From contig JAMWBK010000008.1 of the NCBI GenBank assembly GCA_029953675.1, positions 496,001 to 560,000 of the forward strand: a stretch of DNA of 64,000 nucleotides. The letters are read 5' to 3'. This DNA comes from Rhodosorus marinus CCMP1338. Its lineage: Eukaryota > Plantae > Rhodophyta. The position numbers and the translations under genes were made by a program. Positions 1,128-25,225 of the stretch are shown in pieces. Position 1 is the stretch's first letter. The number at the start of each line of letters is the position of its first letter. Under the pieces are notes generated by a model that made no database searches, was not told the DNA's origin, and worked only from the letters and a program-made list of their open reading frames with translations.

Positions 1128-2537
1128 TCAGATGCAGTGTTGGGAGGAAAACGCTTCTGATACTTTCTCTGGAAGGTAATTTTCGACGAGAAAGTCGTCT
1201 CCGTATGCCTGGCATGGAAGATGTGGAAAGATTCGTTGAACTGTAGGATGCATTGTAGATATCGGGCTGCGTTTCTTTGGCTTTTAGAGGATCTTCCTTA
1301 CAGAAAGTGCCTCGAGCTCTAACTTCTGGGCCGATTCATGGAAGAAAGCGATCGCAGACTTGATTGCGTCTCTACCAGTCGTTACAAGTCTCTGATCCTG
1401 TTCGGGGGTTGTTTTGAGTTCAAAAAACTCGTCTGGTGGCGTTTCTGGTTAATGCATTCGTTTTCTTTGGTTCCATCCATACGCTGAAAAAGCTCTCCAG
1501 GCTCTTGACTAGCTGTTTCTCGCGCTCGGTGATGTGTAGCCAGAATTGACTGCCGAGATCTTGATGTTCTATGGGATTGACTCCGAGCCAGATTATCCTG
1601 CCGAGTTTCGGACATCTCTATCAGCAAAATAGTCACGATCGAAAACCGTTCTCCAGCCTGAACATACTGCGATCCAAGGAATGGCGGCATAAAACACCGT
1701 GCTATGTCGAGTCCATGCGGATCTCCATCCGTAAGGAGAAAGAAGGGAAGCCTGTGTCCTCTTCTCTCGGTCTCGTCCCTTATGAGTCTCAGGAGCTCCA
1801 ATGTGGAAACATTGGGATAGCCTTGCTTGGATGCAACAAAGGGAAACTGAGCAGACCGAAATCAATGAATCGACCAGACCTTCAGCAGCTAGTACCTTTG
1901 GCCGTGACAAGCACCGCTCCATGCTGCACGTCAAATCTTGATCTTGCTAACTTGACAAATATGGTTTCCTTCTCAACTATCTACTCGAGGTTCATGTTAT
2001 TCACACCAAGGTACTTAGCCGAAAGTAGACTAATCATCCGCACCCAGTCGAAAGCTTGGGACATTGCCGTACGAGAACATAGTTTGCGGCCAGCTGGAGC
2101 GCCCTGATCCTCAGCGGACGGGCCGGTATGAAGCACCCAAGCGAAGGAAATTTGAAAGCGTCTACAAAGTTTCCATTTTCGTCCGTCCAGGAAATGGCTC
2201 CTAGAACCCTGCCTCTGGAGCTTGCAACAATGTTCAGGTCGTTGCGCGCGAAGTTGAGCATTTTGGCGACCGTTTCAAGCGTTTGGTCGGATGCGCGCTG
2301 ACACTTGAACAACTTGACGTTCGTGTAGTATAAATCCCTCTTGGTAATCGTCTGGGACTGATCGACCAGCTCAAATACAGACGCAAGGACATGCAATAAG
2401 CGAGCAAGGGATAAAGACTTGTATCCATGAAAACCCTCCTCGATCGCGCCAAGGACAAGGTTTTCAATCGCCAACATCACTCCTTGACGCCGTTCCGCAA
2501 TATCTACAGACCGACTTGGAACCTTCAAAAATAACAT
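1128..2537 (-). CDS. SPO11: Spo11/Top6A family topoisomerase-like protein, multi-exon, meiotic Spo11-like
   Basis: Motifs TKRDLYY (catalytic Tyr), IVEKETIF, TAK|GYPNVST, TOPRIM LTDGDPHG, KLELEAL, and a last exon AYGDDFLVENYLPEKV...HCI* with the stop at 1128-1130. The 5' end is uncertain. Confidence 0.9.
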
Positions 2538-3125
2538 GACTGCTCCAGGAGTCTGTAGAATCTAGTCAAGGCCTGCAGATCCTGTGCTTGTCCCATAATC
2601 TATCTTGCTCACCAAAACTTAACCCTCGAACCAGAATCTCAATCGACGGCTTCCACAAGATGGCTCCTCGGTAAGCTCCGCGTCGTCCCCATATACTTAT
2701 GCGCCGCTTCTCAGAATCTCTAAGGTAACATTGGATAGCCATGAGACCCGTGCCCGGCCAAGGAGAAACTATGAAAATATTAACAGAAGCGCCTGAACAG
2801 CGGTCAACTCTGGTATCATGGGCCAAAGCACTCTTGGCCCATGAGATAAAAAAAGGAACATCAGCCTAATTTAGGAAACCGAGCTTTGGTTAGAATGAAG
2901 ATGCTGCTGAGGGGATTTTTAGGCAGTAGTCGTTTTTTTCACGCAGTCCTAAGGAATCTGCTCCAATAGCCAAAAGAGTGGAACAAGAAGAACATCTTCG
3001 GCTGCCACATCGTCGTGTTGATCAAACCTCGTAGTTAGTTGTAGTAGTTTGCAAATGCGGTTCGAAACACGAAATTTCGCTACCTTTTCAAAACGGGCGA
3101 GTTTAAATCAACGCAACTCCGTTCC

Positions 3126-5171
3126 TCAGCTCGTTGACTCCTCGATTCCCTCCTCGAGGGAGACGGCGTTCCCCTCACGGGTCATGTAACCTTTCATCTC
3201 CGCTGGATTTCCGTATACGAGTGCAAACGGCATCACGTCCTTCGTTACCACTGACCCGGCGCCGACAAAAGCATAGCTAATGGGCAAATCGCAAGATGAC
3301 ATAGTTTTAGGGCTAGGCACAGCTTGGAGCTGTCGAGAATAGCGCGAAAGTCATCTACGAACCTCCCAATCTCTACACCGCATACAATTGTCGAATTTGC
3401 GCCAATGGTAGCCCCTTCGTTAACGGCAGTATGCATGAACTCATCTCTTCGGATAACCTCGCTCCGCGGGTTCTTTACGTTCGTGAAGACAACACTCGGT
3501 CCAACGAATACGTTATCAGCCAGGGACACGCCGTCGTAAACCGAAACATTGTTCTGAACTTTGACATTCTTCCCAAGAACGGCTTTGCTAGCAATATACA
3601 CATTCTGACCTATATTACAGTTGTCACTGCAACCGAGAAGATCCCACAGACGTTCCTTAAGTACATATACCACTCAACGAGACCCAGCTATTCGGTCTCC
3701 ACTACCGTGAGAGACCGTGCAGGCTTGCTGGCGATGTTCGTCAGCAAGTCTGCACGCTGAGGAAGTGCTGGGGAAAGTATCCTACTACTAGACAAGCCTT
3801 ACCCAATAACTGCACCGGGCATCACATGCGAAAAATGCCATATCCTCGTGCCGTGACCTATGACAGCTCCTTCATCTATTACAGCTGTACTGTGGCTCTT
3901 ATATCCTGGGCTCGGTAAAGAAATGTCCGTTGTTTGAGACTTCCCAACCGCAGAGTCACCACTGTTTGACGGAGGCAATCCGGTTTCAAATGTTGCAAGC
4001 GATCCTCTGGCGTTCGAGGACTTGGCCGCGTCCAGTTGTTTCTGTGCTTTCTCCAAAACCCAGAGTACATCCAGCGCCTCGTCGGAATTGGTCAGTGGCT
4101 TTTCTCTATCTTTGCAGCGGTCCAGGAAGTGCCTGACCTCAACTGCTAGCGCCCTCTCTCCGTCCGCGGAGAGCGTCGGAGTAGAATAACCATGTTCCAA
4201 TTTGATCGCCACGGGACTGGGCTTGGGCTGCTCCGCAGTTGGCTGTGTTGCGGCGTATCTGAACACCTTGAGCTGTTCCTGCAACGGCTTTGCTGCATCA
4301 TAGACGATGAAACCTTCCGTTCCGATGATCACCATCTCTCGGTGCAAATAAGGGTGCAGCCAGCTGACGCTGATTGTTGCCGTGCGGTCACCTGGATGAC
4401 GAGGGAACCGGCGGTAAGCCTTTCAAGTCGACAGGAAACCGTGAGGCTTTGGGGAAGGAGAAAGCACACCTTCAAAGCCGAGATTGAGGGAGACAAAATC
4501 CTCTACGTTTCCCAGAAGAGCCTGTCCTGTACAGGTCACTTTTGTTGCCCTTCCACCGAAAATTCTTGAGGCTAATGAAATATCGTGAACTGCCAGGGAC
4601 CACAGAGCGTTCTCATCCGCTCTGACAGTGCCAAAGTTCAGTCTGTTTGACTTCAAGTGCTTCGGATCTCCGATTGCGTTTGAAGATAACAGATCCAGGA
4701 GCTTCTGCACTGCCAGATCATAGTTTAGGATGTGTCCAACCTGAAGTACAATCGAGCAGCGACGCAGTCTCGATCAGCGATGTGCAAAGTGACGATGCTC
4801 AGAACTATGTTACGTGTTACCATTAGAATGGACCCCTTCTTCCTCTCAAGATTCTGCAGCTCAAGCCCCTCATTCTCGCTTAAGCAAAGCGGCTTCTCGA
4901 CGAAGACGTCCTTTCCCAATTCGAGGGCTTCAGATGCTATCTTGAAGTGCGTTTTCGCTGGAGTCACGACTAACACTGTCTTCACTGAGTCGCTCTCCAA
5001 TGCCTTGCGGTAGTGGTTCACACAAGACAACCCTTTAGCGCTCCAATCGACCAGCCGCGAATCGTCTGAATCACAGACAATCAATTGATCGCCAAAGCCC
5101 AGGTCTACCAGCGTCCTCACATGGTTCTTCCCAAACCTGCCAGCGCCGATCACAAGAATATCGCCTTCCAT
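3126..5171 (-). CDS. Fusion of a Gfo/Idh/MocA oxidoreductase (WbpB/WlbA-like) and a hexapeptide-repeat N-acetyltransferase (WbpD/WlbB-like), 4 introns
   Basis: N-half: [60 protein letters not shown]-half: [32 protein letters not shown]...[13 protein letters not shown]...[42 protein letters not shown]...GNPA. The two domains are joined inside one exon (ORF 3799-4347). Confidence 0.88.
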
Positions 5172-6198
5172 GCTTGTCCTTCTCAAGACCTAGAAACTCT
5201 AGTCTCTTTGTTAGGAGCCAATCGTCCCGTGAACGGATCCAGCCCATTCCCAGTTTCCCACGTGCGATCTCTTATAGACTCAACATGGGACGCTGTCCCG
5301 AAAACTGTCCCAGTTTTGTCCCATTCTCGTCCCGTTCTCGTCCCATTTTCTGCTTGGTGCACCATAAGTTCTTTCGCGGACAGGGTCGTCACACTATGGT
5401 TGTGTCACGTTGGTCTGCTTTTTCGCTGACTACGACGGTACAGAAGTGGGCAAACCGTGAAGATCCACGAGAACACACTAACGACAATAGTATCAATCAC
5501 CATGGACTGTGCCAAGAAGAGTTGGTGAAGTGGTCAAAAAGGTTGTAAAGAGCTTTGCTTCGAGAGGAATATACTCGCAACCACTACACTGATGCGAGGC
5601 GCTGCAGCTCGGTCAATGCGGTAACTGAAGGGATTCCAGTGCGTTGCGGCGATGTTAGGCTCTGCGCTTCGCGATGATGCATTGCTCTACCGGTTTGGTA
5701 ACCACAAATCGCAATATCCATTTCACTCCGAACTGACGACGCCCTTTTAAGTCTCTCTCTGTTAAACAATCTCGCCACCCCCACTCATCATCGAGTGCTT
5801 TGGTTTAGTTGATAGTGTAGGTTCTAGTTGGCTTCGTGGGCTCTTTCCGTACAACCCGGGGCGTCTTGACAGCCTCCTCACGGAGCTGTCCTTGACCCTC
5901 TGGCGTTCCAACGCGGCTTTATTGTTGGACGCGCGGCATCAGCGTCTTGTTTCTCGCTTCTCAGGATAGTTCGGCTCTTAATAAACGGATGACGGATGAT
6001 GATGGTACATTAGATCTCCCAATGTTGGTAGAAGCAGATCCTCCCACAGAGAGTATCAGGGATCTTCTGAATCAGCGGATGATGATGACGATGATGATGA
6101 TGAAGATCGGAGGCAACGCTGCTTTATTGTTGGACGCACGTCATCAGCGTCTTGTTTCTCGCTGCTCAGGGTAGTTAGGCTCTGAATAAACGGATCAT

Positions 6199-7031
6199 CG
6201 GAATTTGTTGGGCAGCGGGGGTCTCAGTCAGGTACGTGACGCAGGCGAGTCTCCGAATTCGTGGGTTTGTCTCAGGGTTGAAGTGTCTGTGTATCACAGA
6301 GATAGCCTGTAGGATTTCTCCCTTCAGGGAGTCCGCAGAGCGGAGTAGATGTGGGTTTTGGGGCACATACGACAACTTCTCGGAGTACCGCTTGCTGATC
6401 AACCGCTGTCGGCGCGCTGCTCCACGTGCCGCACCACCCATGACGCCTACGGGTATCAACTGCTCCACCGCTGCCCGAGCTCCATACGCATGCGCGTCCA
6501 TCGCCACCACGAGTTAGTGACAACCGTCGCGCGACTGTTGCGAGAGTGGTGTTGCGAGGATGTCCTCGTCGAGCCCGGCCTCATGAAAGAGGAATGAGGA
6601 CCAGCCCCATCCAGCACCTGATACTCAGGCGACATACCCTAGGACGTACCGGACGCTCTTCTTCGATGCCGTGGTCACCAGTCCTTTCCGGACACACACC
6701 CTGCAAAGATCCGCCAATCGCACTGGCCATTCCGCCGACACTGCCGCTCAACGAAAAACCACAAAGATCCGCCAATCGCACTGGCCATTCCGCCGACACT
6801 GCCGCTCAACGGAAAACCAACAACTACCGCGCCGCCGTCACCGACCCGGAGGATTTCATCCCGATAGCCATGGAAACATATAGACGACTCGCCACTCACA
6901 CGATGACCGAACTTCGCAGCCTCACCAGGCACCTTGACTCCGACCGCAACGTCCTCAACAGAGCCCTCGCCTCGATTAACCGGACCCTGTGGAGGGGCAA
7001 TGCCTGGAGTGGCCTTAATAGCTTTAGGTAG
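6199..7031 (+). mobile_element. Family 2 RLE retroelement 3' fragment with an inverted 5' part
   Basis: + strand: IRQLLGVP...CSTCRTTHDAYGYQLLHRC...RHHEL, LFFDAVVTSP, FIPIAMETY, RTLWRGNA, ending at (TAGG)n. Bases 6199-6365 are the reverse complement of sequence like 7560-7716. Confidence 0.8.
6704..6819 (+). repeat. 58-bp tandem duplication inside family 2 RLE
   Basis: CAAAGATCCGCCAATCGCACTGGCCATTCCGCCGACACTGCCGCTCAACG... starts at 6704 and again at 6762. Confidence 0.9.
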
Positions 7032-7137
7032 GTAGGTGATGATCCGTAGGTAGGTAGTGTTACGAGGAGTCACCTGGCGGTGACGTCCCGTTCCCTATCG
7101 TAGGACACCCACCCGGGGTTGTTAGTTTCTCAATAAA

Positions 7138-7800
7138 GGGGGTGGGGTGTGTAGCATCCGCCACGGTTCTTTCTTGCCGTACACCTACCTCTCCGTCGTG
7201 CATAATCCCGGAATCGGGAGTCCTAGCAATTGTCGTATATTCAGGTGCAGGCCCTTACCACTCAATTTTAATGGCTTACAAATACCGAAGAAGTCTGGCC
7301 CGAGAAGCCGAATACATTTGGAGCGAATCATAGACTGTCTACAAACAGCCCCTACCGAAGACTTGGCAAGAAACAACCCTACATGGCAGCAGGTCGCCCT
7401 CCCCTGCAGGAGGGGAGGCCTTGGATTCTGCACTCGAAGACGTGTCAAACCCATTGCCTTCTACACGGCATAGATACACACCTTCCAGGAGAACCAAGGC
7501 TACTGGCCACACGTCAAAGCCTGCAAGAAAGAACCGTGGCGGATGCTGCACACCCCACCCCTAGAAGCCCACATCTACTCCGCTCTACGGACTCCCTGAA
7601 GGGGCAAATCTTACAGGGTAGCTCTGCGATACAGAGACACGTCAACCCTGAGACCAACCCACGGAGCTCGCCTGCGTCACGAACCTGACTGAGACCCCCT
7701 TTGTCCAACAAATTCCTAACCAGCCCTGGTGAAGCATGGTTCCATCCAAATTGTTTTCACCGGCTGGTCTCTCATTCCCTGGTCGACCCCGAGTACAGAG
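7138..7800. mobile_element. Family 2 post-RT fragments in mixed orientation
   Basis: + strand WQQVALPCRRGGLGF (thumb motif). - strand LHLNIRQLLGLPIP. Bases 7138-7178 are an inverted copy of 7522-7561. Confidence 0.7.
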
Positions 7801-7852
7801 CTCGAATCATCATCATTCATTTATTCAGAGGTAAGAGCGAGAGACAAGACCC

Positions 7853-10838
7853 TCATCGCTTGCGCAGGAGGTTTTCTTTTCTTTTGGATTTCCTGCTTAT
7901 GGAGGTGGCCGACCATCCTCAAGCCGCACTTGCTTGGAAGCTTTTGTTTGTTTTTCCTCGGCCAGTGCTCACGGTCTCCCAGGGGCACGATGCATGTCCA
8001 ATTAGACGCAAAGTTCAATCTTTTCTGGCGGGGGACTTTGCTTTCTTAGAATCTTTATACCTCGCTAGTGTCTCTTCTTCCTCTTCGTGCGGAACTTCAC
8101 CTTCTTCTCGTTCGCGTGGGCAGGTACGGGCAAAGGCAGCAGTGGCACAGGGGGATATTCGGCGTGGGGCGGCCATCCTCCAGCAAGGCGCTTCAGTCGA
8201 GCCGTATCGGACTGACCTGGCTGATCCAGTCGCCGCGTTGTTCCCTGCGCGCGACGTGAGTTGGAACTCTGAGTTCCAGCGTGTCTTAGATCCTTTTGTC
8301 GATTCCTCACGCGGTAGGGGTCGGTTGCTTGTTCGGCCGGATGAGGTTCTGGCTCTGCTTAGGCCCTCCCCGAAAGGTCGTGCACCTGGTCCCTCAGGAC
8401 TCCGGGTCGAACTTTTTCACTGGTTGGGTGAAGAAGGGCTGGACGTCCTTGCGCGGGTACTGGAGGGTCTTGTCAATGGGGACGGTTTTTGCGTAGAGGC
8501 CTGGGCACTATTGTCGCGCTCTCAGCTGGTCCTCTTGCCCAAGCCTGGACATTCAGACCAGACACCTTCCCTTCGGCCAATCGGGATGTGCGAAGCATTG
8601 CGAAAGCTGGCGAGCCGCTTTCTATCGCGTCAGCTCACTAGGGAGGCCAGGGTTTTTTTTGGGTTGACCCAGGTCGGTGTCGGCTATTCAGGTGGCTGTG
8701 AACTGGTGACGCGTATCCTGCAGCTGGACGGTCTCCGCGATGAGCCCTTGGGCACGCTTTCTCTGGATTTCGCCAAGCCGTTTACCAGTGTGTCTCGTGC
8801 ACACGCGCTTGAGGTAGTTCGTCAGCTTTTCCCCTCTGGCTTCCCGTTCTTACGCCGCGTATATGGTGAAGCGCCGAACGGGCCCCGATTTGTCACCTTG
8901 GGTGCCGAGAGCCACACTTTTGCGGCTCATACGGGTGTGCAGCAGGGCGATCCCTTAGGGCCGTTCCTGCACGCCTGTGGATTGCAACTGGTGCTGTTGC
9001 GGCTGAAACATCAGTTGATGATGATCAGTTCCCGCGGGTCCGTGCGGTCGTTTTCCATGACGTTGTGACGCTTCTTGGCACTCCCGACGACCGGCCTACG
9101 ATTTTCTCGGCGAGGTGGCTTCCTTGGTGGGGCTGCGTATCAACCACGCCAAGTGCGACTTCTGGGCGGGGTCTCACTCTCACTGCACCGCGGACGCGGT
9201 TCCATCCAGGTTCCGAGATATTTGGCGAGCTGAGGGCTTCCTTCTGTTCGGTGTCCTCGTAGGCACTCGATATTTGTTGAACGCAGCCTTTCCGCGCTCC
9301 TGAGTCATCATGATGAGCTCCTGACTGAGCTGTGCAGTCTCCCAGAAGGGTACCTCCAGACCGCTCTGCTCACCTTCCGGTTCAGCGCGTGCCAGAGGTT
9401 GACCTATTTTTTGCGGCAGCTACCCTCCGAGTGGGGGCTTGGCTGGCGCTCCGCGCAGACCGAGGAGCGAGGGACGTGCTAGGCACGCTGATGGATGCTG
9501 AGCTATCTGTTTTGGGGGATGCAGAAAAGGACGTCCTTCACCGGCAGATCGCGTTGCCCGTGCGGCTGGGCGGGCTGGCTGTGGGATCTTACGCGGCGAT
9601 CCAGCCGGCGGCTGTAGTGAGTTCGTGGGCCAATGCGCTTAATACATGGTCTACGGAGTGTGATCCGCATGTGAGTGGTTTGTTGAGTGGACTTCGGGTT
9701 GGGCGGCTGGACGGGACTCTCGCTCCACGGCTTGGGAGGGTTTTTGCGGAACTGGTGGCCGCTTTCAACAATGTACCGCCCTGCCGAGTGGTACCCAGGC
9801 TCGTTGCGATTCCTGGGCGGCAGTTCTTGACTCCCTCGGTGGCCAGCGTTCGGGAGTCTCTGCTACAGCACCGTGTGTTGGAAATGGTGTAGAAACTGCC
9901 GAGGATATTGACGCCGTGGCTGTGCCGTCGAGACCGCCAGAGGAGGGCGTTTCCCGGTCGGGTCCGGCCCCTTCGAGGACCGATGTAATCCAAAAAACCC
10001 TTTCGTGGGACATACACCGCGACTCGTATGCCACCCTTCTGAGTTGTCTCAGCTCCCTTTTCTTCGCGGTCATACCTGCGTATCCGCGGTTGGCGCTTAC
10101 CGATCTCGAACTTCGTGTAAGCTTACGACTTTACCTGGGCTTGCCGCAACCCCCTTGGCCTGTTGAGCGGGATTCTAGATGCGCATTGTGCGGGGCCAAT
10201 GTGCCGTGGGGTGATTACGGTGCGCATCTGTTGGCGTCTTGTGCGGAGGTTCAAGGGGCCCGGACCAGACGCCATACGCGGCTCAACCGCTTGTTGCTCC
10301 GCTACCTTCGTTCTCAATCACTCGGTACGGACCGAGAAGTGAAGTATGAGGTCGCTCTGGCGGTGGCATCGGAAATTGCTGATGAGAGTGACGCCCCAGC
10401 GGTACAGCGGGTGGCGGATCTCGTTGTGACTGACCTCAATGCGCGTCGCAGTGAGTACATTGACCTCTCCATGCCTTGCCCTCAGGCGACCAGGTACCTG
10501 CCTGCGTCGGCTCGGCGTCGAGGAGCTGCAGCTCGGTCCATGCGGCAAGTGAAAAAGTCGCAGTACGCGGCAGCGATGTCAAACCCTACCTTTCGCGATT
10601 CGGCGGTGACATACCGGTTCATCCCCCTCATTATTGAGTGCTTTGGCTTGATAGATAGTGTAGGTTCTCGCTGGCACCGAGCTCTGTTTCGCAACGACCC
10701 GGGGCGTTTAGATAGTCTGCTCACGGAGCTTTCTTTGACACTGTGGCGCTCCAATTCTGCTTTGTTTGTGGAAACGCGTCATCAGCGTCTTGTCTCTCGC
10801 TTCTCAGGGTAGTTAGCCTCTGATTAAACGGATCATCA
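7853..10838 (+). mobile_element. Near-complete family 1 CRE-like element (RT-CCHC-RLE), 5'-truncated and frameshifted
   Basis: RT motifs GRAPGPSG, LRPIGMCEALR, TQVGVGYSGGCE, LSLDF, GVQQGDPLGP, GLRINHAKC, LPVRLGGL. Then CALCGANVPWGDYGAHLLASC, RHTRL, VADLVV..EYIDLS..VKKSQY, FIPLIIECFG. The stop lies ~12 nt before the terminal signal and GGATCATC. Confidence 0.93.
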
Positions 10839-10873
10839 CGAACTGATGATGATGACGCGCGTCTACAAACAAA

Positions 10874-10933
10874 GCAGCATTTGACTGTCACAGGCAGCAT
10901 TTGACTGTCACAGGCAGCATTTGACTGTCACAG
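10874..10933. repeat. 3 x 20-bp tandem repeat inside a minus-strand family 1 fragment
   Basis: GCAGCATTTGACTGTCACAG occurs three times. Other copies of the element have a single related unit. Confidence 0.95.
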
Positions 10934-12440
10934 GGTCAAAGAAAGCTGCGTTAGCAGACTATCTAGACGCCCTAGGTGGTTGCGAAAGATACCTCGCAGC
11001 CAGCGGAGAAATTCTCCCCCTCACTATTGAATGTTTTGGCTTGATATATAGTGTAGGTTCTCGCTGGCTGCGAGGTATCTCAACGACCCAGGGCGTCTAG
11101 ATAGTCTGCTCACGGAGCTTTCTTTGACCCTGTGGCGTTCAAATGCTGCTTTGTTTGTAGACGCGCGTAATCATCATCATCATCATCAGCGCCTGTCTCT
11201 CGCTTCTAAGGGTAGTTAGCCTCTGAATAAACCTGATTGATCCTCGATGTGCATTGTGCGGGGCCAATATGCTTGGGGTGATTACGGTGCGCACTTGTTG
11301 GCGTCTTGTGCGGAGGTTCAAGGGGCCCGGATCAGACGCCTTACGCGGCTCAACCGAGGGCTTTTCCGCTACCTTCGTTCTCAATCGCTCGGTACGGACC
11401 GTGAAGTGGAGCATGAGGTCCCTCTGGCGGTGGCATCGGAAATTGCCGACGAGAGTGACGCCCTAGCGGTACAGCGGGTGGCGAATCTCGTTGTGTCCGA
11501 CCTAAACGCGCGTCGCAGTGAGTACATTGACCTCTCCAACCCTTGTCCTCAAGCGACCAGGTACCTGCCAGCATCCGCTCGGGGTCGAGGAATTGCAGTT
11601 CGGTCCATGCGGCAGGCATGTGAATGAATCGCACTACGCGGCAGCGATGTCAAACCCTACTTTTCGCGATTCAGCGATAACATACCTGTTTGTTCCCCTC
11701 ATTATTGAATGCCGCTTGATATATAGTAGGTTCTCGCTGGCTGCGATGTATCTTTCGCAACGACCCAGGGCGTATAGATAGTCTGCTCACGGAGCTTTGG
11801 GGGGAGTCTCAGCTCCCGTTTCTTCACGGTCATACCTGCGTATCCGCAGGCGCTTACCGATCTCGAACTTCGTGTAAGCTTACGACTTTACCTGGGCTTG
11901 CCGCAACCCCCTTGGCCTGTTGAGCGGGATTCTAGATGCGCATTGTGCGGGACCAATGTGCCGTGGGGTGATTATGGTGCGCATCTGTTGGCGTCTTGTG
12001 CGGAGGTTCAAGGGGCCCGGACCAGACGCCATACGCGGCTCAAGCGCTTGCTTTTCCGCTACCTTCGTTCTCAATCGCTCCGTACTGACCGAGAAGTGGA
12101 GTATGAGGTCGCTCTGGCGGTGGCATCGGAAATTGCCGATGAGAGTGACACTACAGCGTGTGGCGCTCCAATTCTGCTTTGTTTGTGGACGCGCGTCATC
12201 AGCGTCTTGTCTCTCGCTTCTCAGGGTAGTTAGCCTCTGAATAAACGGATCATCATCGAGCTTTCTTTGACCCTGTGGCGCTCAGATGCTGCTTTGTTAC
12301 TAGACGCGCATCAAGGGCGTCTTGTCTCTCGCTTCTCAGGGTAGTTAGCCTCTAAATAAACCTGATGAGTATACGACAATTGCCAGGACTCCCGATTCCG
12401 GGAGTACGGACGCCGGAGAGGTGTACTATGTCGGTACAAA

Positions 12441-12960
12441 CGATGATGATCCGTTTATTCAGAGGCTAACTACTCTGAGAAGCGAGAGAGTAGACGCTGA
12501 TGACGCGCGTCCACAAACAAAGCAGAATTGGATCGCCACAGGGTCAAAGAATGCTCCGTGAGCAGACTATCTAAACGCCCCGGGTCGTTGCGAAACAGAG
12601 CTCGCAGCCACCGAGAACCTACACTATCTATCAAGCCAAAGCACTCAATAATGAGAGGCACGAACCGGAATGTCACCGCTGAATCGCGAAAGGTAGGGTT
12701 TGACATCGCTGCCGCGTACTGCGAATCTTTTACTTGCCGCATGGACCGAGCTGCAGCTCCTCGACGCCGAGCCGACGCAGGCAGGTACCTGGTCGCCTGA
12801 GGACAAGGCATGGAGAGGTCAATGTACTCACTGCGACGCGCATTGAGGTCAGTCACAACGAGATCCGCCACCCGCTGTACCTCTGGGGCGTCACTCTCAT
12901 AAGCAATTTCCGATGCCACGGCCAGAGCGACCTCATACTCCACTTCTCGGTCCGTACCGA
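12441..12960 (-). mobile_element. Family 1 3' fragment (RLE plus tail)
   Basis: ORF 12470-12973 encodes the RLE domain. The tail appears as GATGATGATCCGTTTATTC at ~12442. Confidence 0.9.
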
Positions 12961-13180
12961 GATATTGGTACAAACCGCGTACAAAGATTCCACCATTCTC
13001 CGACTTCGACTGGGCTGGTGCAACGGCGACATAAAGAGATCTGCACTGAGCTGGCGCGCTGCCTCAACATCCTGCAGTTTAGGGATGTTCAGCAAGAACC
13101 TACAGATTACTTGACAAACTCGAATTTGAGACCGATCTGGTTGGTGTCGATCCACCCACGAACAGCGCAAACAAAGATTT
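12961..13180 (+). mobile_element. Fragment of a third RLE-type retroelement family
   Basis: Translation VQRRHKEICTELARCLNILQFRDVQQEPTDYLTNSNLRP shows the RH...EP...LRP(D) pattern of an RLE start and differs from families 1 and 2. Confidence 0.6.
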
Positions 13181-13289
13181 ATGATGATGATCGATGATGA
13201 TGATCAGTCTAGTTTTTTTTGCGATCGATGTGACGGTGGTGTCACCCCTACTGACGAGCACCGATAATACTTCTACGCTTCCCCGAACC

Positions 13290-13860
13290 ATGACCCTGCT
13301 AGCTGCCGAGATCTAGAACCTGCTCCGCACTGTCTCGGAGAACTTGCCCGCAGATTGCTCGCCTTCCCTAGCCCACGGCGCCACATGGGACGGACTCCTG
13401 AACCCGAGTCCTGTGCAACGCCCACTGCCGTCAACTGAGACCGCCGAAGACAACCCACCACGGCCTTTAACCCACGTGCATGCGCCTTCTCCAAAGCTCC
13501 GCATCAGACAGCGTACAGGGCGATAGTCGACAAGCCGATGGTCCCAGTCTACATGCGAGCTCTGCCTCGATCAGTAACCGGTGGCGCAAGCGGTCCCTGG
13601 CTTCGCGATATTCCAACAGTCCGCGCACTCTCCGTCACAAGGCATAAACTCATCGTGAAGATCCTTGGAATGCCGCGTTCATCAAGCGCAGCCCGCGCCC
13701 TGCCCCTCCTGCAGAACGACCCATGACATCTCCGGTTATCAACTCCTCCCTCGTTGCTCCCGCTCCCTACGACTGCGGGGGAGCGGTAGGAAGTGTGGAG
13801 GAGTCGATAACCGTAGTCGTCACGGATCCCCATCCATCGACACCACGAGCTAGTGCGGAC
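13290..13860 (+). mobile_element. Family 2-like fragments (pre-CCHC and CCHC), last part inverted
   Basis: GASGPWLRDIPT and CPSCRTTHDISGYQLLPRC on +. The - strand at 13790-13860 reads DDYGYRLLH. Confidence 0.7.
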
Positions 13861-14159
13861 CACCGTCTCTCGCTTCTTCACGGAGCTTTCTTTGACCCTG
13901 TGGCGCTCCAATTCTGCTTTGTTCGTGGACGCGCGTCATCAGCGTCTTGTCTCTCCCTTCTCAGGGTAGTTAGCCTCTGAATAAACGGATCTCAGGGTAG
14001 TTAGCCTCTGAATAAACGGGATGGCATGCTTTATACGCCACCCCACCAAGGAAGCCACCTCGCCAAGAAACTCGTAGGCCGGCACCAGATCGTCAGGGGT
14101 GCCAAGGAGCGTCACATCGTCATGGAAGGCGACTACACTACACGCGGCTACACTACACA

Positions 14160-15052
14160 AAAAAACTTTTCCTCGGACATACATCGCGACTCGTACGCCA
14201 CCCTTCTAGGTGGTTCAGCTTCCTCTCCGCCTTCGACTTTGGCTCGCCTTCGTGCTTTGGGGGGTAGCCTCAGCTCTCACTTCTTTACGGTCATTCCTGC
14301 CTACCCGCGGCTAGTGATAACAGACTTCGAGATGCGCACGAGCTTACGTTTGTACTTTGGCTTGCCCCAACCGCCATGGCCCGCGGCTGGGGCCTCGAGT
14401 TGTAACCTGTGCGGTAGCCACGTGCCGTGCGGTGAATTCGGTGGACACCAGGGGTTGGCGTCCTGTCCGCAGGTCCAGGGGGCCCGGACTCGTCGGCATA
14501 CGCGGCTCAACCGGTTGCTGTTTCGCTATCTTCGTTCCCAGATGCTGGGCACGGACCGGGAGGTGGAGTATGTGGTCCCTCTGCCCGTCGCCACGGCAAT
14601 TACTGATACGGCTGACTCACCAGGGGTGCAGCGGGTGGCGGATCTAGTGGTAACTGATCTCAGCGCCTGTCGGAGTGAGTACGTTGACCTTTCCATTCCT
14701 TGTCCTCAGGCGACCAGATACCTACCCGCATCTGCACGCTGCCGTGGCGCTGCGGCTCGGTCAATGCGGCAACTGAAGGAGTCCCATTACGCTGCAGCTA
14801 TGTTGGACTCTACGATCCGCGATTCGGCCTTGTCCTATCGGTTTGTTCCACTCATCATCGAGTGTTTTGGTTTAGTTGATTGTGTCGGCTCTCGCTGGCT
14901 TCGTGGGCTCTTTCGTCACAGCCCAAGTCGTCTTGATAGCCTCCTCACGGAGCTGTCCTTAACTTTATGGCGTTCCAACGTGGCTTTACTGTTCGACGCG
15001 CGTCATCAGCGTCTTGTTTCTCGCTTCTCAGGGTAGTTAGGCTCTGATAAAC
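14160..15052 (+). mobile_element. Family 1 subfamily b 3' half (CCHC-RLE), open frame
   Basis: ORF 14026-15036: CNLCGSHVPCGEFGGH..LASC, RHTRL, VADLVV, FVPLIIECFG, ...HQRLVSRFSG*. It is diverged from subfamily a at the DNA level. Confidence 0.88.
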
Positions 15053-16789
15053 TGATCAGACCCGTGCGAACTGATGTTTCAGCCGCAACAGCACCAGTTG
15101 CAATCCACAGGCGTGCAGAAACGTCCTTAAGGGATCGCCCTGCTGCACACCCGTACGTGCCGCAACGCTGCGGCTCTCGGCACCCAGGGTGACAATGCGA
15201 GGCACGTGTGGCGCTTGGCCATATACGCGATGTAAGAGTGTGTTGGAAATGGTGTAGAAACTGCCGAGGATATTGACGCCGTGGCTGTGCCGTCGAGACC
15301 GCCAGAGGAGGGCGTTTCCCGGTCGGGTCCGGCCCCTTCGAGGACCGATGTAATCCAAAAAACCCTTGCGTGGGACATACATCGGGACTCGTATTGGCAT
15401 ACGAGTCCCGATGTATGTGCCACCCTTCTGAGTTTACCTTCGTACTCGGCGTCGACTTTGGCTCGCCTGCGCGGTTTCGGGGGGAGTCTCAGCTCCTGTT
15501 TCTTCACGGTCATACCTGCGTATCCGCGGTTGGCGCTTACCGATCTCGAACTTCGTGTAAGCTTACGACTTTACCTGGGCTTGCCGCAACCCCCTTGGCC
15601 TGTTGAGCGGGATTCTAGATGCGCATTGTGCGGGGCCAATGTGCCGTGGGGTGATTATGGTGCGCATCTGCTGTTCAAGGGGCCCGGTCCAGACGCCATA
15701 CGCGGCTCAACCGCTTGCTGTTCCGCTACCTTCGTTCTCAATCGCTCGGTACGGACCGAGAAGTGAAGTATGAGGTCGCTCTGGCGGTGGCATCGGAAAT
15801 TGACGATGAGAGTGACGCCCCAGAGGTACAGCGGGTGCCGGATCTCGTTGTGACTGACCTCAATGCGCGTCGCAGTGAGTACATTGACCTCTCCATGCCT
15901 TGCCCTCAGGCGACCAGGTACCTGCCTGCGTCGGCTCGGCGTCGAGGAGCTGCCGCTCGGTCCATGCGGCAAGTGAAAGATTCGCAACGCAGTACGCGGC
16001 AGCGATGTCAAACTCTACCTTTCGCGATTCGGCGGTGACATGCTGGTTCATCCCCCTCATTTTGAGTGCTTTGACTTGATAGATAGTGTAGGTTCTCGCT
16101 GGCTGCGAGCTCTGTTTCGCAACGACCCAGAGCGTTTGGATAGTCTGCTCATGGAGCTTTCTTTGACCCTGTGGCGCTCCAATTCTGCTTTGTTTGTGGA
16201 CGCGCGTCATCAGCGTCTTGTCTCTCGCTTCTCAGGGTAGTTAGCCTCTGAATAAGCGGATCATCATGTAAGAGCTGGAAGCCGGCGCAGATGACGACCT
16301 CAAGGGCGTGTGCTCTCGACACACTCTTAAACGCGTCGGTGAAATCCACCGAAAACGTGTCCAAGGGCTCATCGCGGCGACCGTCCAACTGCAGGATGCA
16401 CGTCACCAGTGCACAGACCTGAATAGCCGACACCGACCCGGGTCAACCCAAAAAAAACCCTGGCCTCCCTAGTGAGCTGACGCGATAGAAAGCGGCTCGC
16501 CGGCTTCCGCAATGCTTCGCACATCCCGATTGGGCAAAAAACAGAGTATCGCGTGTATAGTCAGTCATAGTCAGTCACGCGCTGGAGGTGGTTCATCAGC
16601 TCTTTCCAGCCGGCTTCCGTTTCTTGCGCAACCGTCATACTTCTCTGGTGAGGGGGTCAATTCTACTCGCCTTCTCACCCTGGGGTTTACTGTGAAACTA
16701 ATAACCCCGGAATGGTGTGCTACGAAAGGGATAGGGGACTCACGATAAACGGATCATCGTTTGTTGTAATATGTGACGACTACCGGAGT

Positions 16790-17150
16790 AATCACCAACT
16801 ACCTAGTACTGAGAGCACTCTCTTGGCTATTGAGGGCAACCCAGGCATTGCCTCTCCACAGCGTGCGGTTCATAGCGGCAAGGGTTCTACTGAGGGCGCT
16901 GCGGTCGGAGTCAGGTGACTCGTGAGCCGCCACCAAGGTCTGTCATCCTACGAGTCGCGAGTTTTCCATAAATCTCGAGGGCTATCAGCATAAAATCCTC
17001 TGAGTCAGCACGGCGGCGCGATATTTGCTGACTTTCCCTTGAGCGGTAGTGTGGGCAGCGAGGCCAGTTCGTGTAGCTGTATGTCGCAGGAAGGCCGCCT
17101 GGAGGGGCTGGTGACTATGACATCGAAGAATAACGGTGTGTTCGCGGGTG
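16790..17150 (-). mobile_element. Family 2 RLE 3' fragment
   Basis: The reverse strand gives PLFFDVIVTSP, KYRAAV, EDFMLIALEIYG and NRTLWRGNAW, homologous to 6650-7020. Confidence 0.75.
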
Positions 17151-18924
17151 TTTCATCGCGTTTATTCAGAGGCTAACTACCCTGAGAAGCGAGAGACAAG
17201 ACGCTGATGACGCGCGTCTACTAACCAAGCAGCATTTGAGCGCCACAGGATGAAAGAAAGCTCCGTGAGCAGACTGTCTAGACGCCCTGGGTCGTTGCGC
17301 GGAGTCACTCTCGTCAGCAATTTCCGATGCCACAGCCAGAGGGACCTCATACTCCACTTCTCGGTCCGTACCGAGCGATTGAGGACGAAGGTAGCGGAAA
17401 AGCCATCGGTTGAGCCTTGTATGGCGTCTGATCCGGGCCCCTTGAACCTCCGCACAAGACGGCAACAAGTGCTTACCATAATCACCCCAAGGCATATTGG
17501 TCCCGCACAATGCGCATCGAGAATCCCGCTCAACAGGCAAAGGGGATTGCGGCAACCCCAGGTACAGTCGCAAGCTTACACGAAGTTCGAGATCGGTAAG
17601 CGCCAACAAACTCGACGCCAGGGTTCGGCAGTCCCTGCTGCAGCCCCGTGTGTAGCAAATGGTGTAGAAACTGCCGAGGATATTGACGCCATGGCTTTGC
17701 CGTCGAGACCGCCAGAGGAGAGCGTTTCCCGGTCGGGTCCGGCCCCTTCGAGGACCGATGTAATCCAAAAAAATCTTTCATCGGACATATATCCGGATTC
17801 GTATGCCACCCTTCTGAGTTTACCTTCCTGCTCGGCGTCGACTTTGGCTTGCCTGCGCGGTTTGGGGGGGGCGTCTCAGCTTCCGCTTCTTCACGGTCCT
17901 ACCGGCGTATCCGCGGTTGGCGCTTACCGATCTCGAACTTGATCATCCGTTTATTCAGAGGCTAACTACCCTGAGAAGCGAGAGACAAGACGCTGATGGC
18001 GTTCGTGCTCGGCGTCGACTTGGGCTCACCTGCGCGGTTTTGGGGGGGAGTCTCAGCTACCGCTTCTTCACGGTCATACCTGCGTATCCGCGGTTGGCGC
18101 TTACCGATCTCGAACTTGATGATGATGATCCGTTTATTCAGAGGCTAACTACCCTGAGAAGCGAGAGACAAGACGCTGATGACGCGCGTCCACAAACAAA
18201 GCAGAATTGGAGCGCCACAGGGTCAAAGAATGCTCCGTGAGCAGACTATCTAAACGCCCTGGGTCGTTGCGAAACAGAGCTCGCAGCCAGCGACAACCTA
18301 CACTATCTATCAAGCCAAAGCACTCAACATGAGGGGGACGAACCGGTATGTCACCGCCGAATCGCGAAAGGTAGGGTTTGACATCGCTGCCGCGTACTGC
18401 GAATCTTTCACTTGCCGCATGGACCGAGCTGCAGCTCCTCGACGCCGAGCCGACGCAGGCAGGTACCTGGTCGCCTGTGGACAAGGCATGGAGAGGTCAA
18501 TGTACTCACTGCGACGCGCATTGGGGGTCAGTCACAACGAGATCCGCTACCCGCTGTACCGCTGGGGCGTCATTCTCATCAGGAATTTCCGATGCCACCG
18601 CCAGAGCGACCTCATACTCCACTTCTCGGTCAGTACGGAGCGATTGAGAACGAAGGTAGCGGAAAAGCAAGCGGTTGAGCCGCGTATGGCGTCTGGTCCG
18701 GGCCCCTTGAACCTCCGCACAAGACACCAACAGATGCGCACCATAATCACCATTGGTTGATAGTGTAGGTTCTCGTTGGCTTCGTGAGCTCTTTCGTAAC
18801 TACCCAGGTCGTCTTGATAGCCTCCTCACGGAGCTGTTCTTGACCTTGTGGCGTTGCAACGCTGCTTTATTGTTGGACTCCCGTCATCAGCATCTTGTTT
18901 CTCGCTTCTCAGGGTAATCTAGAA

Positions 18925-19345
18925 AACCGCAGGGTTTTGGATTGTGATTGTGGTCTGGAGTTGGGTTTGGCGCATTTTTGGGTGCCTAAGTGTTCTTTCG
19001 TGGGAGGCGCTGCTTTGAGCGGTCTTTCCCCCGCTTGTTTCTCAGTCTGTGTAAAACGGTTGGTGGTTATTAGGGGGTTTTGACGTTCTCCGGGGGTTGC
19101 GGAGGTGTTTCTCTTTTTCTTCGGGTGGGTTCGAGTGCGTTTTTGGCGGGGATTTCCCTTGGACTCAGAAGGTGCCTGGTGGTTGTGCTCTTCTACGGCG
19201 TTCTTTCGCGGTCCCCCTCGTGATGGCGGCGTCGAGCACCCCACCGTTGTCGGTGGAACTCCGGCTTGGGCGATTTGGCACGCTCGCCGCGCTGCCAGGT
19301 TGCTCCAAGGCTACCGCAGAGGTCATAGTCATTCATATTGAGCGC
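18925..19345 (+). mobile_element. Putative 5' UTR and ORF start of a retroelement (copy 1)
   Basis: Near-identical to the reverse complement of ~24815-25222. An ATG opens MAASSTPPLSVELRLGRFGTL. Confidence 0.6.
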
Positions 19346-19474
19346 TGTTGATGATGATCCGTTTATTCAGAGGTAGTTATACCCTGAGAAGCAAGACGCT
19401 GACGACGCGCGTCCAAAAACAAAGCAGAATTGGAGCGCCACAGGGTCAAAGAAAGCTCCGTGAGCAGACTACCT

Positions 19475-21015
19475 GTTTCTTTTTCCTCGGCTAGTGCTCA
19501 CTGTCTCCCAGGGGCGCCATGCCTGTCCCATTAGACGTGAAGTCCAGTCTTTTCTCGCAGGGGACTTTGCTTTCCTGGAATCTTTGTACCTTGCTAGTGT
19601 GTCTACTTCCTCTTTGAAGTCGAACGACTTCGCCTCCTCTCGTTCTCATCGCCAGGCTAGGGCAAAGGCAGCAGTGGCACAGGGGGATATTCGGCGGGGG
19701 GCGGCCATTCTACAGCAACGCGTTTCAGTCGAGCGTTATCGAACTGACTTGGCTGACACAGTTGCCGCGTTGTTTCCTGCGCACGACGCGAATTGGAACC
19801 CTGCGTTCCAGCGTGTCTTAGATCCTTATGTCGCCTCCACGATTGACACGGGCAGGTTGCTTGGTTCGGCCTGAAGAGGTTTTGGCTCTTCTTGGGTCCG
19901 CCCCGAAGGGTCGTGCACCGGATCCCTCAGGTCTCCGGGTTGAGCTTTTGCACTGGTTGGGCGAGGAGGGCCTCGACGCCCTTGCGCGAGTGGTGGAGGG
20001 TCTTGTAAATGGGGACGATTTTTGCATCGATGCCTGGGCCCTACTGTCGCGGTCGCACCTGGTGCTACTCCGTAAGCTTGGGCATTCGCGCCAGACGCAA
20101 TCCCTACGCCCCATCGGGATGTGCGAGACCCTGCGCAAGTTAGCGAGCCGTTTTCTGTCTCGCACGCTCACTAATGAGGCACGGGGTTTTTTCGGCCTGA
20201 CCCAGGTGGGTGTGGGCTATTCGGGCGGCTGTGAGCTGGTGACTCGCATCATGCAGTCGGACAGCCTCGGGGAGGAGCCTTTCGGTACACTTTCGGTCGA
20301 TTTTGCGAACGCCTTTAACAGCGTGTCGCGTGTTCACGCGCTCGAGGTGGTTCGTCAGCTCTTCCCTTCCGGTTTCCGTTTCGTGCGCCGGGTCTACGGG
20401 GAGGGGCCAACTTGCCCTCGCCTTGTCACCTTGGGTGCAGACAGCCAGAGCTTTGTGTCACAGACGGGTGTTCAGCAGGGAGACCCCTTAGGGCCTCTTC
20501 TGCACGCACGTGGATTGCAGTTGGCGCTGTTGCGCGTGCAGCATCAGTCCCCGCGGGTCCGCGTCGTCGCCTTCCATGACGATGTGACCCTTCTCGGGAC
20601 TCCTGATGATTTGGTGCAGGCGTACTCCCATCTGGGCGAGGTGGCGTCCTTGATAGGCGTACGGATCGATCACGGCAAGTGTGACTTTTGGGGAGGCCCT
20701 CAGTGTGCTACGGCCCAGGTTCCCTCTCTCTGTTCCGGGACATTTGGCGTCCCGAGGGCCTCATTCTATTCGGTGTCCCTGTGGGCACTGCGAGTTTCGT
20801 GGAGCGCAACCTTCGAGCGCGGCTGGGCCGCCACGATGAGCTCTTGAATGAGCTGTGCCGCCTACCGGAGGGGTACCTCCAGATCGCTCTGCTCCTCTTC
20901 AGGTTCAGTGCGTGTCAACGCCTGAACTATTTTCTGCGGCAGCTCCCTTCGACGTAGGGGCCTTGGCTAGCCCTTCGCGCTGATCAGCGTGCGAGGGACG
21001 TTTTGAGCACACTGG
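19475..21015 (+). mobile_element. Family 1 subfamily b RT domain, frameshifted
   Basis: ORF 19828-20847: LRPIGMCETLR, VDFANAFNSVSR, GVQQGDPLGPLL, VAFHDDVTL, GVRIDHGKC. Confidence 0.9.
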
Positions 21016-21099
21016 TGATAGATAGTGTACGTTCTCGCTGGCTGCGAGCTCTGTTTCGCAACGACCCAGGGCGTTTAGATAGTCTGCTCACCGAGCGGA

Positions 21100-23684: not shown

Positions 23685-23691
23685 ACCAAGA

Positions 23692-24351
23692 CTATATAAG
23701 ACCTAGCTTTGCTAGATCTTGAGACCTAGAATTAAGTAAAGACAAGTTGGTTAGAAGAGTTCTAACAGGTCCAGTCGACCCGAGCTCCTGGGACAGATTC
23801 CTCGGTATCTGGCCCTGTACCCCACTAGGCTCGAGGGCGAGCTGATCCACCTCCGAATCCCCGGCATCAAAATCCATGGCAGAAGGCTCAACCACAGGCA
23901 GAGGCTCTACGCCCGCAGAGAGACCCCCCACTGGGAACACCTCAGCAAAATCGGGATGGTTCTCCAAGAGCGAAGTTTCAGAGACAAAGAAATCATGGAC
24001 AGCGGAGTGGAGAAGGCCCCGAGTTGGAAGCCGGTCGAGAAGGTTCTTCTGAGCGCCTGAAAGGCGCTCAAAATGCGCCGAAATCGCCGATCGCAGAAGG
24101 TCCGCGGGGCGCGCCCCAAGGAGATCCGCAGGCGCAAGCGAGTCAGAGGAAAAACGGTCAAAATCAAGCACGAGGGACACGTGGGCGCGAGTCAGAATCT
24201 TATTCGCTAAAACCGGCCGCTGTGAGGGAGGCGTTTGCAACAGCGTAGAGAGGATTTGATAAGCGGTATCGGAGACCAGGAAGGTAGCGTGAGGGCCCGA
24301 AAAATCAACGGAGAGAAAATCGCGAGGGGACGTGCCCGGGCACGAGGCCAT
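23692..24351 (-). CDS. Orphan 219-aa ORF inside the array, possibly ORF1/gag-like protein of another element
   Basis: A stop-free 660-bp frame with protein-like composition. No recognisable domain. Confidence 0.4.
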   Translation of the reverse strand: MASCPGTSPRDFLSVDFSGPHATFLVSDTAYQILSTLLQTPPSQRPVLANKILTRAHVSLVLDFDRFSSDSLAPADLLGARPADLLRSAISAHFERLSGAQKNLLDRLPTRGLLHSAVHDFFVSETSLLENHPDFAEVFPVGGLSAGVEPLPVVEPSAMDFDAGDSEVDQLALEPSGVQGQIPRNLSQELGSTGPVRTLLTNLSLLNSRSQDLAKLGLI

Positions 24352-24475
24352 GGTGTCTCAAAAATCGCGAACAGGAATGCGGGCCCCGGAGCGCGAGGAG
24401 CGCTGGGGTCGCACATTGGTCATTAAGACCCAACTCAGAGGAGAGAGTGTGCGCTGAACAGAGTCAACAGCAGGC

Positions 24476-25225
24476 TCAGGCGGGAAAGCAAGTGCTTACC
24501 AGGGCCTCCACTCGGGCCTCAACAGCCCCACGCCGGAGGACTTGGGAATAGGAAGGATGCGCTGGGCGAGAAGGAGCAGCATGGGCACAGGGCCAGATAC
24601 CGAGGAATCTGCCCCCGCAGCTCGGGTCGACTGGACCGCTGGGGCAAGGACAGCTGTCCCCGCAGCGATCGTCAGGCACGGGTGGGACAGGGGCAGTTGG
24701 GACAGCCGCCGCCACCGCCGACGGCGAGCCCGGACCCGGGGCATTGGCAAAGGCGGCAAGGGAGGAAGTCAGCTCCGGGAGGGGGTTGGCCTCGGCAGCA
24801 ACAGCAACAGCGCGAGCAATATGAATGACTAGGGCCTCTGTGGTAGCCTTGGAGCAATCTGGCAGCTCGGCGAGCGTGCCAAATCGCCCAAGCCGGAGTT
24901 CCACCGACAACGGTGGGGTGCTCGACGCGGCCATCACGAGGGGGACCGCGAAAGAACGCCGTAGAAGGGCACAACCATCAGGCACCTTCTGAGTCCACGG
25001 GAAATCCCCGCCAAAAACGCACTTGAACCCACCCGAAGAAAAAGAGAAACACCTCCGCAACCCCCGGAGAACGTCAAAACCCCCTAACAACCACCAACCG
25101 TTTTACACAGACCGAGAAACAAGCGGGGGAAAGACCGCTCAAAGCAGCGCCTCCCACGAAAGAACACTTAGGCACCCAAAAATGCGCCAAACCCAACTCC
25201 AGACCACAATCACAATCCAAAACGT
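24476..25225 (-). mobile_element. Putative 5' UTR and Ala/Pro-rich ORF start of a retroelement (copy 2)
   Basis: Homologous to 18925-19345 and continues into an Ala/Pro-rich ORF (24476-25090). Confidence 0.6.

Follow-up and report, generated by a model that had tools for sequence, protein, structure and literature searches.

To our knowledge, 2,3-diacetamido sugars have been reported only from bacteria, as parts of O-antigens and capsules, and from archaea, as parts of N-glycans. The enzymes of their synthesis include WbpB of Pseudomonas aeruginosa and WlbA of Bordetella, Chromobacterium and Thermus, which are 3-dehydrogenases of uridine diphosphate (UDP)-N-acetylglucosaminuronic acid (UDP-GlcNAcA) with 2-oxoglutarate-linked recycling of NAD+, and WbpD of P. 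aeruginosa and WlbB of Bordetella petrii (structure 3MQG), stand-alone 3-N-acetyltransferases of about 190 amino acids (aa) that act on UDP-2-acetamido-3-amino-2,3-dideoxyglucuronic acid (UDP-GlcNAc3NA). The well-studied Methanococcus pathway uses separate enzymes, and the dehydrogenase GnnA feeds lipid A. The archaeal MMP0352, a stand-alone enzyme, has been used as a dehydrogenase of UDP-N-acetylglucosamine (UDP-GlcNAc) (bioRxiv 10.1101/2023.03.18.533286), and five Wbp steps leading to UDP-2,3-diacetamido-2,3-dideoxymannuronic acid (UDP-ManNAc3NAcA) have been described (PMC10622841). Here we analyze a gene of the red alga Rhodosorus marinus CCMP1338 in which a Gfo/Idh/MocA-type dehydrogenase is joined to a beta-helix acetyltransferase. 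The gene sits on the 2.1-Mb contig JAMWBK010000008.1 of assembly GCA_029953675.1, within a stretch of 64,000 nt (contig positions 496,001 to 560,000, forward strand) that we refer to as the window. We consider it likely that this is a nuclear gene that was transferred from a bacterium already fused, was then domesticated, and serves a bifunctional 3-dehydrogenase/3-N-acetyltransferase route.

Gene structure, expression and constraint

Rebuilding the gene from the minus-strand sequence (positions 2500-5800 were read) gave five exons and four introns, with GT..AG ends in all four of the latter (Table 1). The spliced coding sequence of 1626 nt runs from an ATG at 5171-5169, preceded by an in-frame stop six codons 5', to a TGA stop codon at 3128-3126, and it encodes 541 aa. 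The NCBI entry KAJ8902702.1, 'hypothetical protein NDN08_006022 [Rhodosorus marinus]', matches this product with 100% identity and 100% coverage; the gene is already in GenBank, but labelled only as a hypothetical protein. The product has three parts, namely a dehydrogenase (aa 5-240), a Ser/Pro-rich linker of about 40 residues and a beta-helix (aa 370-532), and Pfam recognizes GFO_IDH_MocA at aa 5-120 (E=1.4e-21), GFO_IDH_MocA_C3 at aa 128-236 (E=7.7e-16) and Hexapep (E=1.2e-24). The motifs WHFSH and FTNVKNPRS fall at aa 392-396 and aa 451-459, respectively. An AlphaFold model of the protein has a mean predicted local distance difference test score (pLDDT) of 87.5; the linker is predicted to be disordered, with a score below 50 over aa 336-367, and aa 372-500 form regular short strands, with scores mostly of 95-98 that drop to about 70 at aa 451-470. 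The junction of exons 4 and 5 (3363/3276, aa 492) splits a codon into AG and C, which encodes the Ser of EIGSYAF. The sister strain and a further eukaryotic transcript (P0003, described below) have Arg at this site (EIGRYAF), which is also variable across bacteria.

Expression is documented by transcripts from another Rhodosorus strain in the Marine Microbial Eukaryote Transcriptome Sequencing Project (MMETSP). One of these, L087, with 85% nucleotide identity, matches the window as four blocks, from which introns 2, 3 and 4 have been cut out exactly where predicted, whereas intron 1 is retained. A full-length translation of 569 aa from the same strain (P0125) is colinear over all four junctions. 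Both domains are carried on one mRNA, since the sister-strain transcripts span junctions of both. The sequence-only reading from which this analysis started had noticed a minus-strand gene with four GT-AG introns, both domains and the signatures WHFSH and FTNVxNPRS, and the rebuilt model, the Pfam matches and the motif positions prove it right throughout; the splicing check that it proposed confirms the predicted junctions and a single mRNA joining the domains, by means of sister-strain transcripts. Intron-retention isoforms also occur among the sister-strain transcripts: retention of intron 1 in L087 (1-802, against window 5253-4469) splits the open reading frame (ORF) in two, and read-through of intron 4 in P0124 leads to a truncated acetyltransferase domain. 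Four introns are normal for this alga, given that its genome contains 8,392 genes and 24,821 introns, an average of about three per gene (PMC10250338). The G+C content at third codon positions (GC3) is 0.566 in the gene, as compared with 0.577 in a neighbouring gene.

Between the two Rhodosorus strains, the ratio of nonsynonymous to synonymous substitution rates (dN/dS, by the Nei-Gojobori method) amounts to 0.23 in the dehydrogenase domain and 0.12 in the acetyltransferase domain, as against 0.83 in the linker. The stretch between the domains (aa 331-369, window 4023-3907) therefore evolves almost neutrally while both domains are constrained, and selection maintains the two enzyme domains. 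The algal protein has kept all residues that are invariant in an alignment of 43 sequences, among them G9/G11/G14, E92-K93-P94, H169-D170, W392/H393/H396 and N453/N456/P457/R458, which correspond to the motifs GxGxxG, EKP, HD, WHxxH and NxxNPR.

Table 1. Positions of the fused gene and its parts, of related bacterial operons and of other genes. Coordinates are those of the window unless a locus is named.
Feature	Coordinates	Strand	Remarks
Whole coding span, 541-aa bifunctional gene	3126..5171	-	identical to GenBank NDN08_006022
5' untranslated region, minimum extent by orthologous transcript alignment	5172..5253	-	holds in-frame stop
Exon 1, aa 1-117, Rossmann NAD-binding part	4821..5171	-	GAGRFG 5147-5130, VEKPL 4901-4887
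Intron 1, 80 nt, GT..AG	4741..4820	-	kept in sister-strain transcript L087, spliced out in P0125
Exon 2, aa 118-208, dehydrogenase substrate-binding domain	4470..4740	-	motifs SNRLNFG, AVHD
Intron 2, 78 nt, GT..AG	4392..4469	-	spliced out of transcript L087
Exon 3, aa 208-404, dehydrogenase end, disordered linker, beta-helix start	3803..4391	-	WHFSH 3840-3826
Intron 3, 176 nt, GT..AG	3627..3802	-	spliced out of transcript L087
Exon 4, aa 404-492, left-handed beta-helix core	3363..3626	-	FTNVKNPRS 3487-3461
Intron 4, 86 nt, GT..AG	3277..3362	-	gone from L087; read through in isoform P0124
Exon 5, aa 492-541 and stop codon, acetyltransferase C-terminal end	3126..3276	-	
3' untranslated region, minimum extent by orthologous transcript alignment	2935..3125	-	
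Compact four-gene operon, Parachlamydia and related metagenomic contigs	L086 5559-10756; L169 3599-8668; L168 3-4976		
Trypsin-like serine protease	32394-33239	+	
Cytochrome b5 domain	39283-39813	+	
Class II phenylalanyl-tRNA synthetase core and FDX-ACB domain, organellar type	60453-61529	-	

Fused family, domain relationships and predicted pathway

Judged by its sequence, the algal protein can be assigned to a bacterial family of fused Gfo/Idh/MocA and left-handed beta-helix proteins. All of its 120 best database matches share the two-domain architecture (E 1e-119 to 1e-160), with 97-100% query coverage and 40-52% identity, one fragment excepted, and those with a name are mostly Chlamydiae (Parachlamydia, Estrella, Chlamydiales), together with Verrucomicrobia; the best bacterial identity is about 45%. 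A scan of prokaryotic genomes, with each species represented once, returned at least 598 matched stretches with relatives. The 80 loci kept from it all encode fused proteins colinear with the algal one, in nearly every case over the full length; they belong to Acidobacteriota, Planctomycetota, Verrucomicrobiota, Nitrospirota, Desulfobacterota, Chloroflexota, Proteobacteria, Patescibacteria and other groups, one Methanobacteriota metagenome-assembled genome (MAG) also being among them. Full-length fused homologues of 37-45% identity are spread over many bacterial phyla. A metagenome scan with the algal protein yielded at least 591 matches, bacterial and of 39-43% identity, and is uninformative on eukaryotic distribution, as it missed even known MMETSP transcripts. 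The bacterial fused proteins, such as those of Parachlamydia and Estrella lausannensis ('Gfo/Idh/MocA family oxidoreductase'), have 510-600 aa, the same domain order and 40-45% identity to the algal protein over 97-100% of the length, and they carry the IMG label 'UDP-2-acetamido-3-amino-2,3-dideoxy-glucuronate N-acetyltransferase'. The algal copy differs from them in its four spliceosomal introns, in being monocistronic and in lacking the DegT, 2-epimerase and 6-dehydrogenase neighbours that flank the bacterial genes. The sequence-only reading had called the gene a eukaryotic fusion, a claim that has to be given up because the same full-length architecture is widespread in prokaryotes; the fusion predates the transfer, and the alga inherited rather than invented it.

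The N-terminal (N) domain shares the superfamily fold and the pathway position of WbpB and WlbA, and the sequence-only reading had identified it with them. A specific affinity to these enzymes is seen neither by sequence nor by fold, as no WlbA/WbpB structure is found among its best 60 PDB sequence matches (to E=1.8e-4) or its best 50 Foldseek fold matches. The best fold match is instead GnnA of Acidithiobacillus ferrooxidans (7BVJ), with a target-normalised template modelling score of 0.90 and a root mean square deviation of 2.5 A; identity is only about 21% despite this top fold match, and a compact domain of about 300 aa is common to both. GnnA 7BVJ is also among the three best sequence matches to solved structures (E=2.7e-13), and among curated families the archaeal UDP-GlcNAc 3-dehydrogenases of NCBIfam NF040723, the family of MMP0352, come closest (E=1.7e-37). 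On this evidence from sequence and model, the N domain is best regarded as a sugar 3-dehydrogenase that occupies the place of WbpB in the pathway and forms a separate subfamily, and the 2-oxoglutarate-linked recycling of NAD+ found in WbpB/WlbA cannot be assumed for it. As the top matches of the domain are UDP-GlcNAc 3-dehydrogenases, its first substrate may be UDP-GlcNAc instead of the uronate. It differs from MMP0352 in that the algal dehydrogenase is fused to an acetyltransferase.

For the C-terminal (C) domain, the assignment to the WbpD/WlbB type made in the same reading is well founded. Over 159 residues (aa 374-532) it has 56.6% identity to WlbB (3MQG; E=7e-57, 196 bits), well ahead of the next matches, the dTDP-sugar N-acetyltransferases 4MZU (137 bits) and 7S43 (132 bits). 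The left-handed beta-helix and the motifs W-H-x-x-H and FTNVxNPR are common to WlbB, WbpD and the algal domain, which forms the C-terminal half of a 541-aa protein where the bacterial enzymes stand alone. The C domain is thus WlbB/WbpD-like, with this enzyme as its nearest characterised relative among the sugar N-acetyltransferases.

We propose that the two domains would act in one route. In the first step, the Gfo/Idh/MocA domain would use NAD+ to oxidise C-3 of UDP-GlcNAc or UDP-GlcNAcA to a 3-keto sugar; in the second, a separate pyridoxal phosphate-dependent aminotransferase of the DegT type, whose gene is presumed to lie outside the window, would convert the 3-keto to a 3-amino sugar; and in the third, the WlbB/WbpD-type beta-helix domain would transfer an acetyl group from acetyl-CoA to the 3-amino nitrogen. 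This would yield a UDP-2,3-diacetamido-2,3-dideoxy-hexose or -hexuronate to be used in a glycan of the alga. As no N-terminal extension precedes the Rossmann fold, the protein probably resides in the cytosol.

The surroundings of the bacterial genes are consistent with such a route. Full-length fused ORFs were available from 73 prokaryotic loci, and in 41 of these a DegT/DnrJ/EryC1 aminotransferase is encoded on the same strand within 200 nt of the fused gene. Where the sequence extends for 4 kb or more to either side (42 loci), DegT is found in 34, a UDP-GlcNAc 2-epimerase in 13 and a UDP-sugar 6-dehydrogenase in 12. Parachlamydia and two of the nearest neighbours of the algal protein have a compact operon composed of 6-dehydrogenase, DegT, fused gene and 2-epimerase, except that in one neighbour the contig ends within the first gene, which has no Pfam assignment and is only presumed to be the 6-dehydrogenase. 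The four genes would cover the five steps of UDP-ManNAc3NAcA synthesis, so that these chlamydial-type operons are predicted to supply the five Wbp activities set out in PMC10622841, and the link to the Wbp pathway drawn from the sequence is upheld through the closest bacterial relatives. The 6-dehydrogenase of the nearest relatives fits either order of steps. On the contig of the metagenomic protein P0102 the order is 6-dehydrogenase, fused gene, 2-epimerase and a Wzm/Wzt transporter. The Methanobacteriota MAG (L016) has its fused gene at 6001-7461, in the same locus as DegT, 2-epimerase and 6-dehydrogenase.

It may tentatively be suggested that Rhodosorus and one other marine eukaryote of the MMETSP make a UDP-2,3-diacetamido sugar for a surface or secreted glycan, with a gene whose donor would have been a bacterium belonging to a Chlamydiae-rich group in which Verrucomicrobia and Planctomycetota are also represented. 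Several points weigh against this suggestion and against the route on which it is based. A nearby 6-dehydrogenase or 2-epimerase is found in only about 30% of the bacterial loci, so that the sugar need not be a uronate, and with regard to substrate the N domain reaches 129.6 bits against NF040723, where the cutoff is 450, and falls outside that equivalog. Glucose, galactose, xylose and galacturonic acid are the only sugars that a review table gives for a Rhodosorus sp. polysaccharide (PMC12073197). Searches by tblastn with queries from the bacterial loci found no homologues of DegT, the short-chain dehydrogenase/reductase (SDR) epimerase, UDP-sugar 6-dehydrogenase or 2-epimerase anywhere in the window (64 kb) or in the adjoining 7 kb before its start, in agreement with the sequence-only reading that the middle enzyme of the DegT/WbpE type is not encoded beside the gene. 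Linkage to DegT is thus seen in bacteria and is absent from the algal locus; in a eukaryote such linkage would not be expected. The alga may lack part of the pathway. Our literature searches found no biochemically characterised member of the fused family, and nothing relevant on diacetamido sugars in red algae or on a transfer of DegT into algae.

A functional gene that has been recruited elsewhere, to another nucleotide sugar or to a GnnA-like supply of 3-keto or 3-amino sugar, with no 2,3-diacetamido sugar made, would explain part of these observations. The nearest relative of the N domain, GnnA, feeds bacterial lipid A and not O-antigen, and the domain stays under every curated family cutoff; partner genes are absent from the window, and the listed Rhodosorus polysaccharide contains no unusual amino sugar (PMC12073197). 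However, the acetyltransferase is the more constrained half of the protein, keeps the family-invariant residues and is 57% identical to WlbB. Because this constraint and conservation would otherwise be hard to explain, a 3-amino UDP-sugar is likely still made and still the substrate of this half, and we regard recruitment elsewhere as unlikely.

That the gene is a decaying relic, transcribed but functionless, is more improbable still. The intron-retention isoforms common among the sister-strain transcripts, together with the lack of pathway partners in the region searched, would be expected of such a relic, but the reading frame is unbroken, both domains have dN/dS values far below 1 in contrast to the drifting linker, and the invariant catalytic and binding residues are all kept. 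A third eukaryotic orthologue, of about 52% identity, is also full length.

Descent of the algal gene

In a neighbour-joining tree of 185 full-length sequences (515 columns, 100 bootstraps), the MMETSP transcript P0003 (JGI sample 3300016877) and the two sequences from Rhodosorus form one clade with a bootstrap of 100; P0003 is about 52% identical to the algal protein (51-54% by alignment), full length and monocistronic, with a 420-nt 3' trailer. The sister of this eukaryotic clade is P0102 (bootstrap 77), and the next group out comprises 114 sequences, including every named member of the Chlamydiae. The per-domain phylogeny that the sequence-only reading called for gives a divided answer: the eukaryotic clade is recovered from the N domain (bootstrap 100) as well as from the C domain (bootstrap 82), but next to a different sister taxon in each. 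Since each domain alone recovers the same eukaryotic clade, the trees support a single acquisition of a gene that was already fused. A chlamydial origin is possible. A firm claim of a chlamydial donor was rejected, as the eukaryotic clade with P0102 branches beside and not inside the group that contains the Chlamydiae, and its sister is unstable.

The domesticated horizontal transfer of bacterial origin proposed at the outset agrees with the introns, the eukaryotic flanks, the host-like composition, the expression and the prokaryote-dominated phylogeny. One could also imagine that separate WbpB and WbpD genes were transferred and then fused in the eukaryote, as gene fusion after transfer is common in eukaryotes and the linker is poorly conserved and near-neutral (dN/dS 0.83). 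This course of events is highly improbable, given that the same domain order and linker are present with 97-100% coverage in hundreds of prokaryotic genomes of many phyla, that each domain alone gives the same eukaryotic clade and that the N domain is not of the WbpB type; a eukaryotic source for the bacterial fused genes is implausible in view of their breadth and operon context. Bacterial contamination or misassembly, to which one might be led because the close homologues are all prokaryotic except for Rhodosorus and one MMETSP transcript, is scarcely credible for a gene whose reading frame is interrupted by four GT-AG introns, which sits among eukaryotic genes on a 2.1-Mb contig, has spliced orthologous transcripts in an independently sequenced strain and a host-like GC3, and whose best bacterial identity is only about 45%.

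Surroundings in the window and implications

The nearby called genes are eukaryotic and encode a TP6A_N (Spo11-like) protein, cwf18, a URGCP-type GTPase and HAUS5. The first of these is a single-exon ORF of 167 aa on the same strand (2034-2537), about 590 nt downstream of the fused gene, which carries the annotation TP6A_N (Spo11/topoisomerase VI subunit A, N-terminal part); Spo11-like proteins are usually longer than this. Upstream, a nest of direct and inverted repeats of about 20 kb (5717-25223) begins some 550 nt from the ATG, and GenBank annotates no genes in the 10 kb upstream of the gene. The nest comprises 13 direct families and inverted arms of up to 524 nt at 95%, its G+C content is raised (0.55-0.59), and it contains several long plus-strand ORFs, of which only 19828-20847 matches Pfam, namely the reverse transcriptase family RVT_1. 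The long upstream ORFs (7.7-22 kb) were rejected as genes, being repeat copies with this single Pfam match, and the nest is probably a cluster of retroelement remains. The tRNA synthetase, protease and cytochrome b5 fragments (Table 1) are ordinary eukaryotic genes with no relation to the fused gene.

With regard to annotation, the N domain of the algal protein should not carry the WbpB label. The large bacterial fused family, common in Chlamydiae and in many soil and sediment phyla, appears to be biochemically uncharacterised, and its first substrate, UDP-GlcNAc or UDP-GlcNAcA, could easily be tested. As for the alga, a whole bifunctional bacterial enzyme appears to have been taken up, to have gained introns at the normal density of its host and to have both halves still under selection. 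The debated chlamydial footprint in Archaeplastida would gain an item of glycan biosynthesis if an origin from the chlamydial group proved true. A complete pathway, if present, would widen the eukaryotic sugar repertoire and would provide a concrete target for glycan analysis in the Stylonematophyceae.

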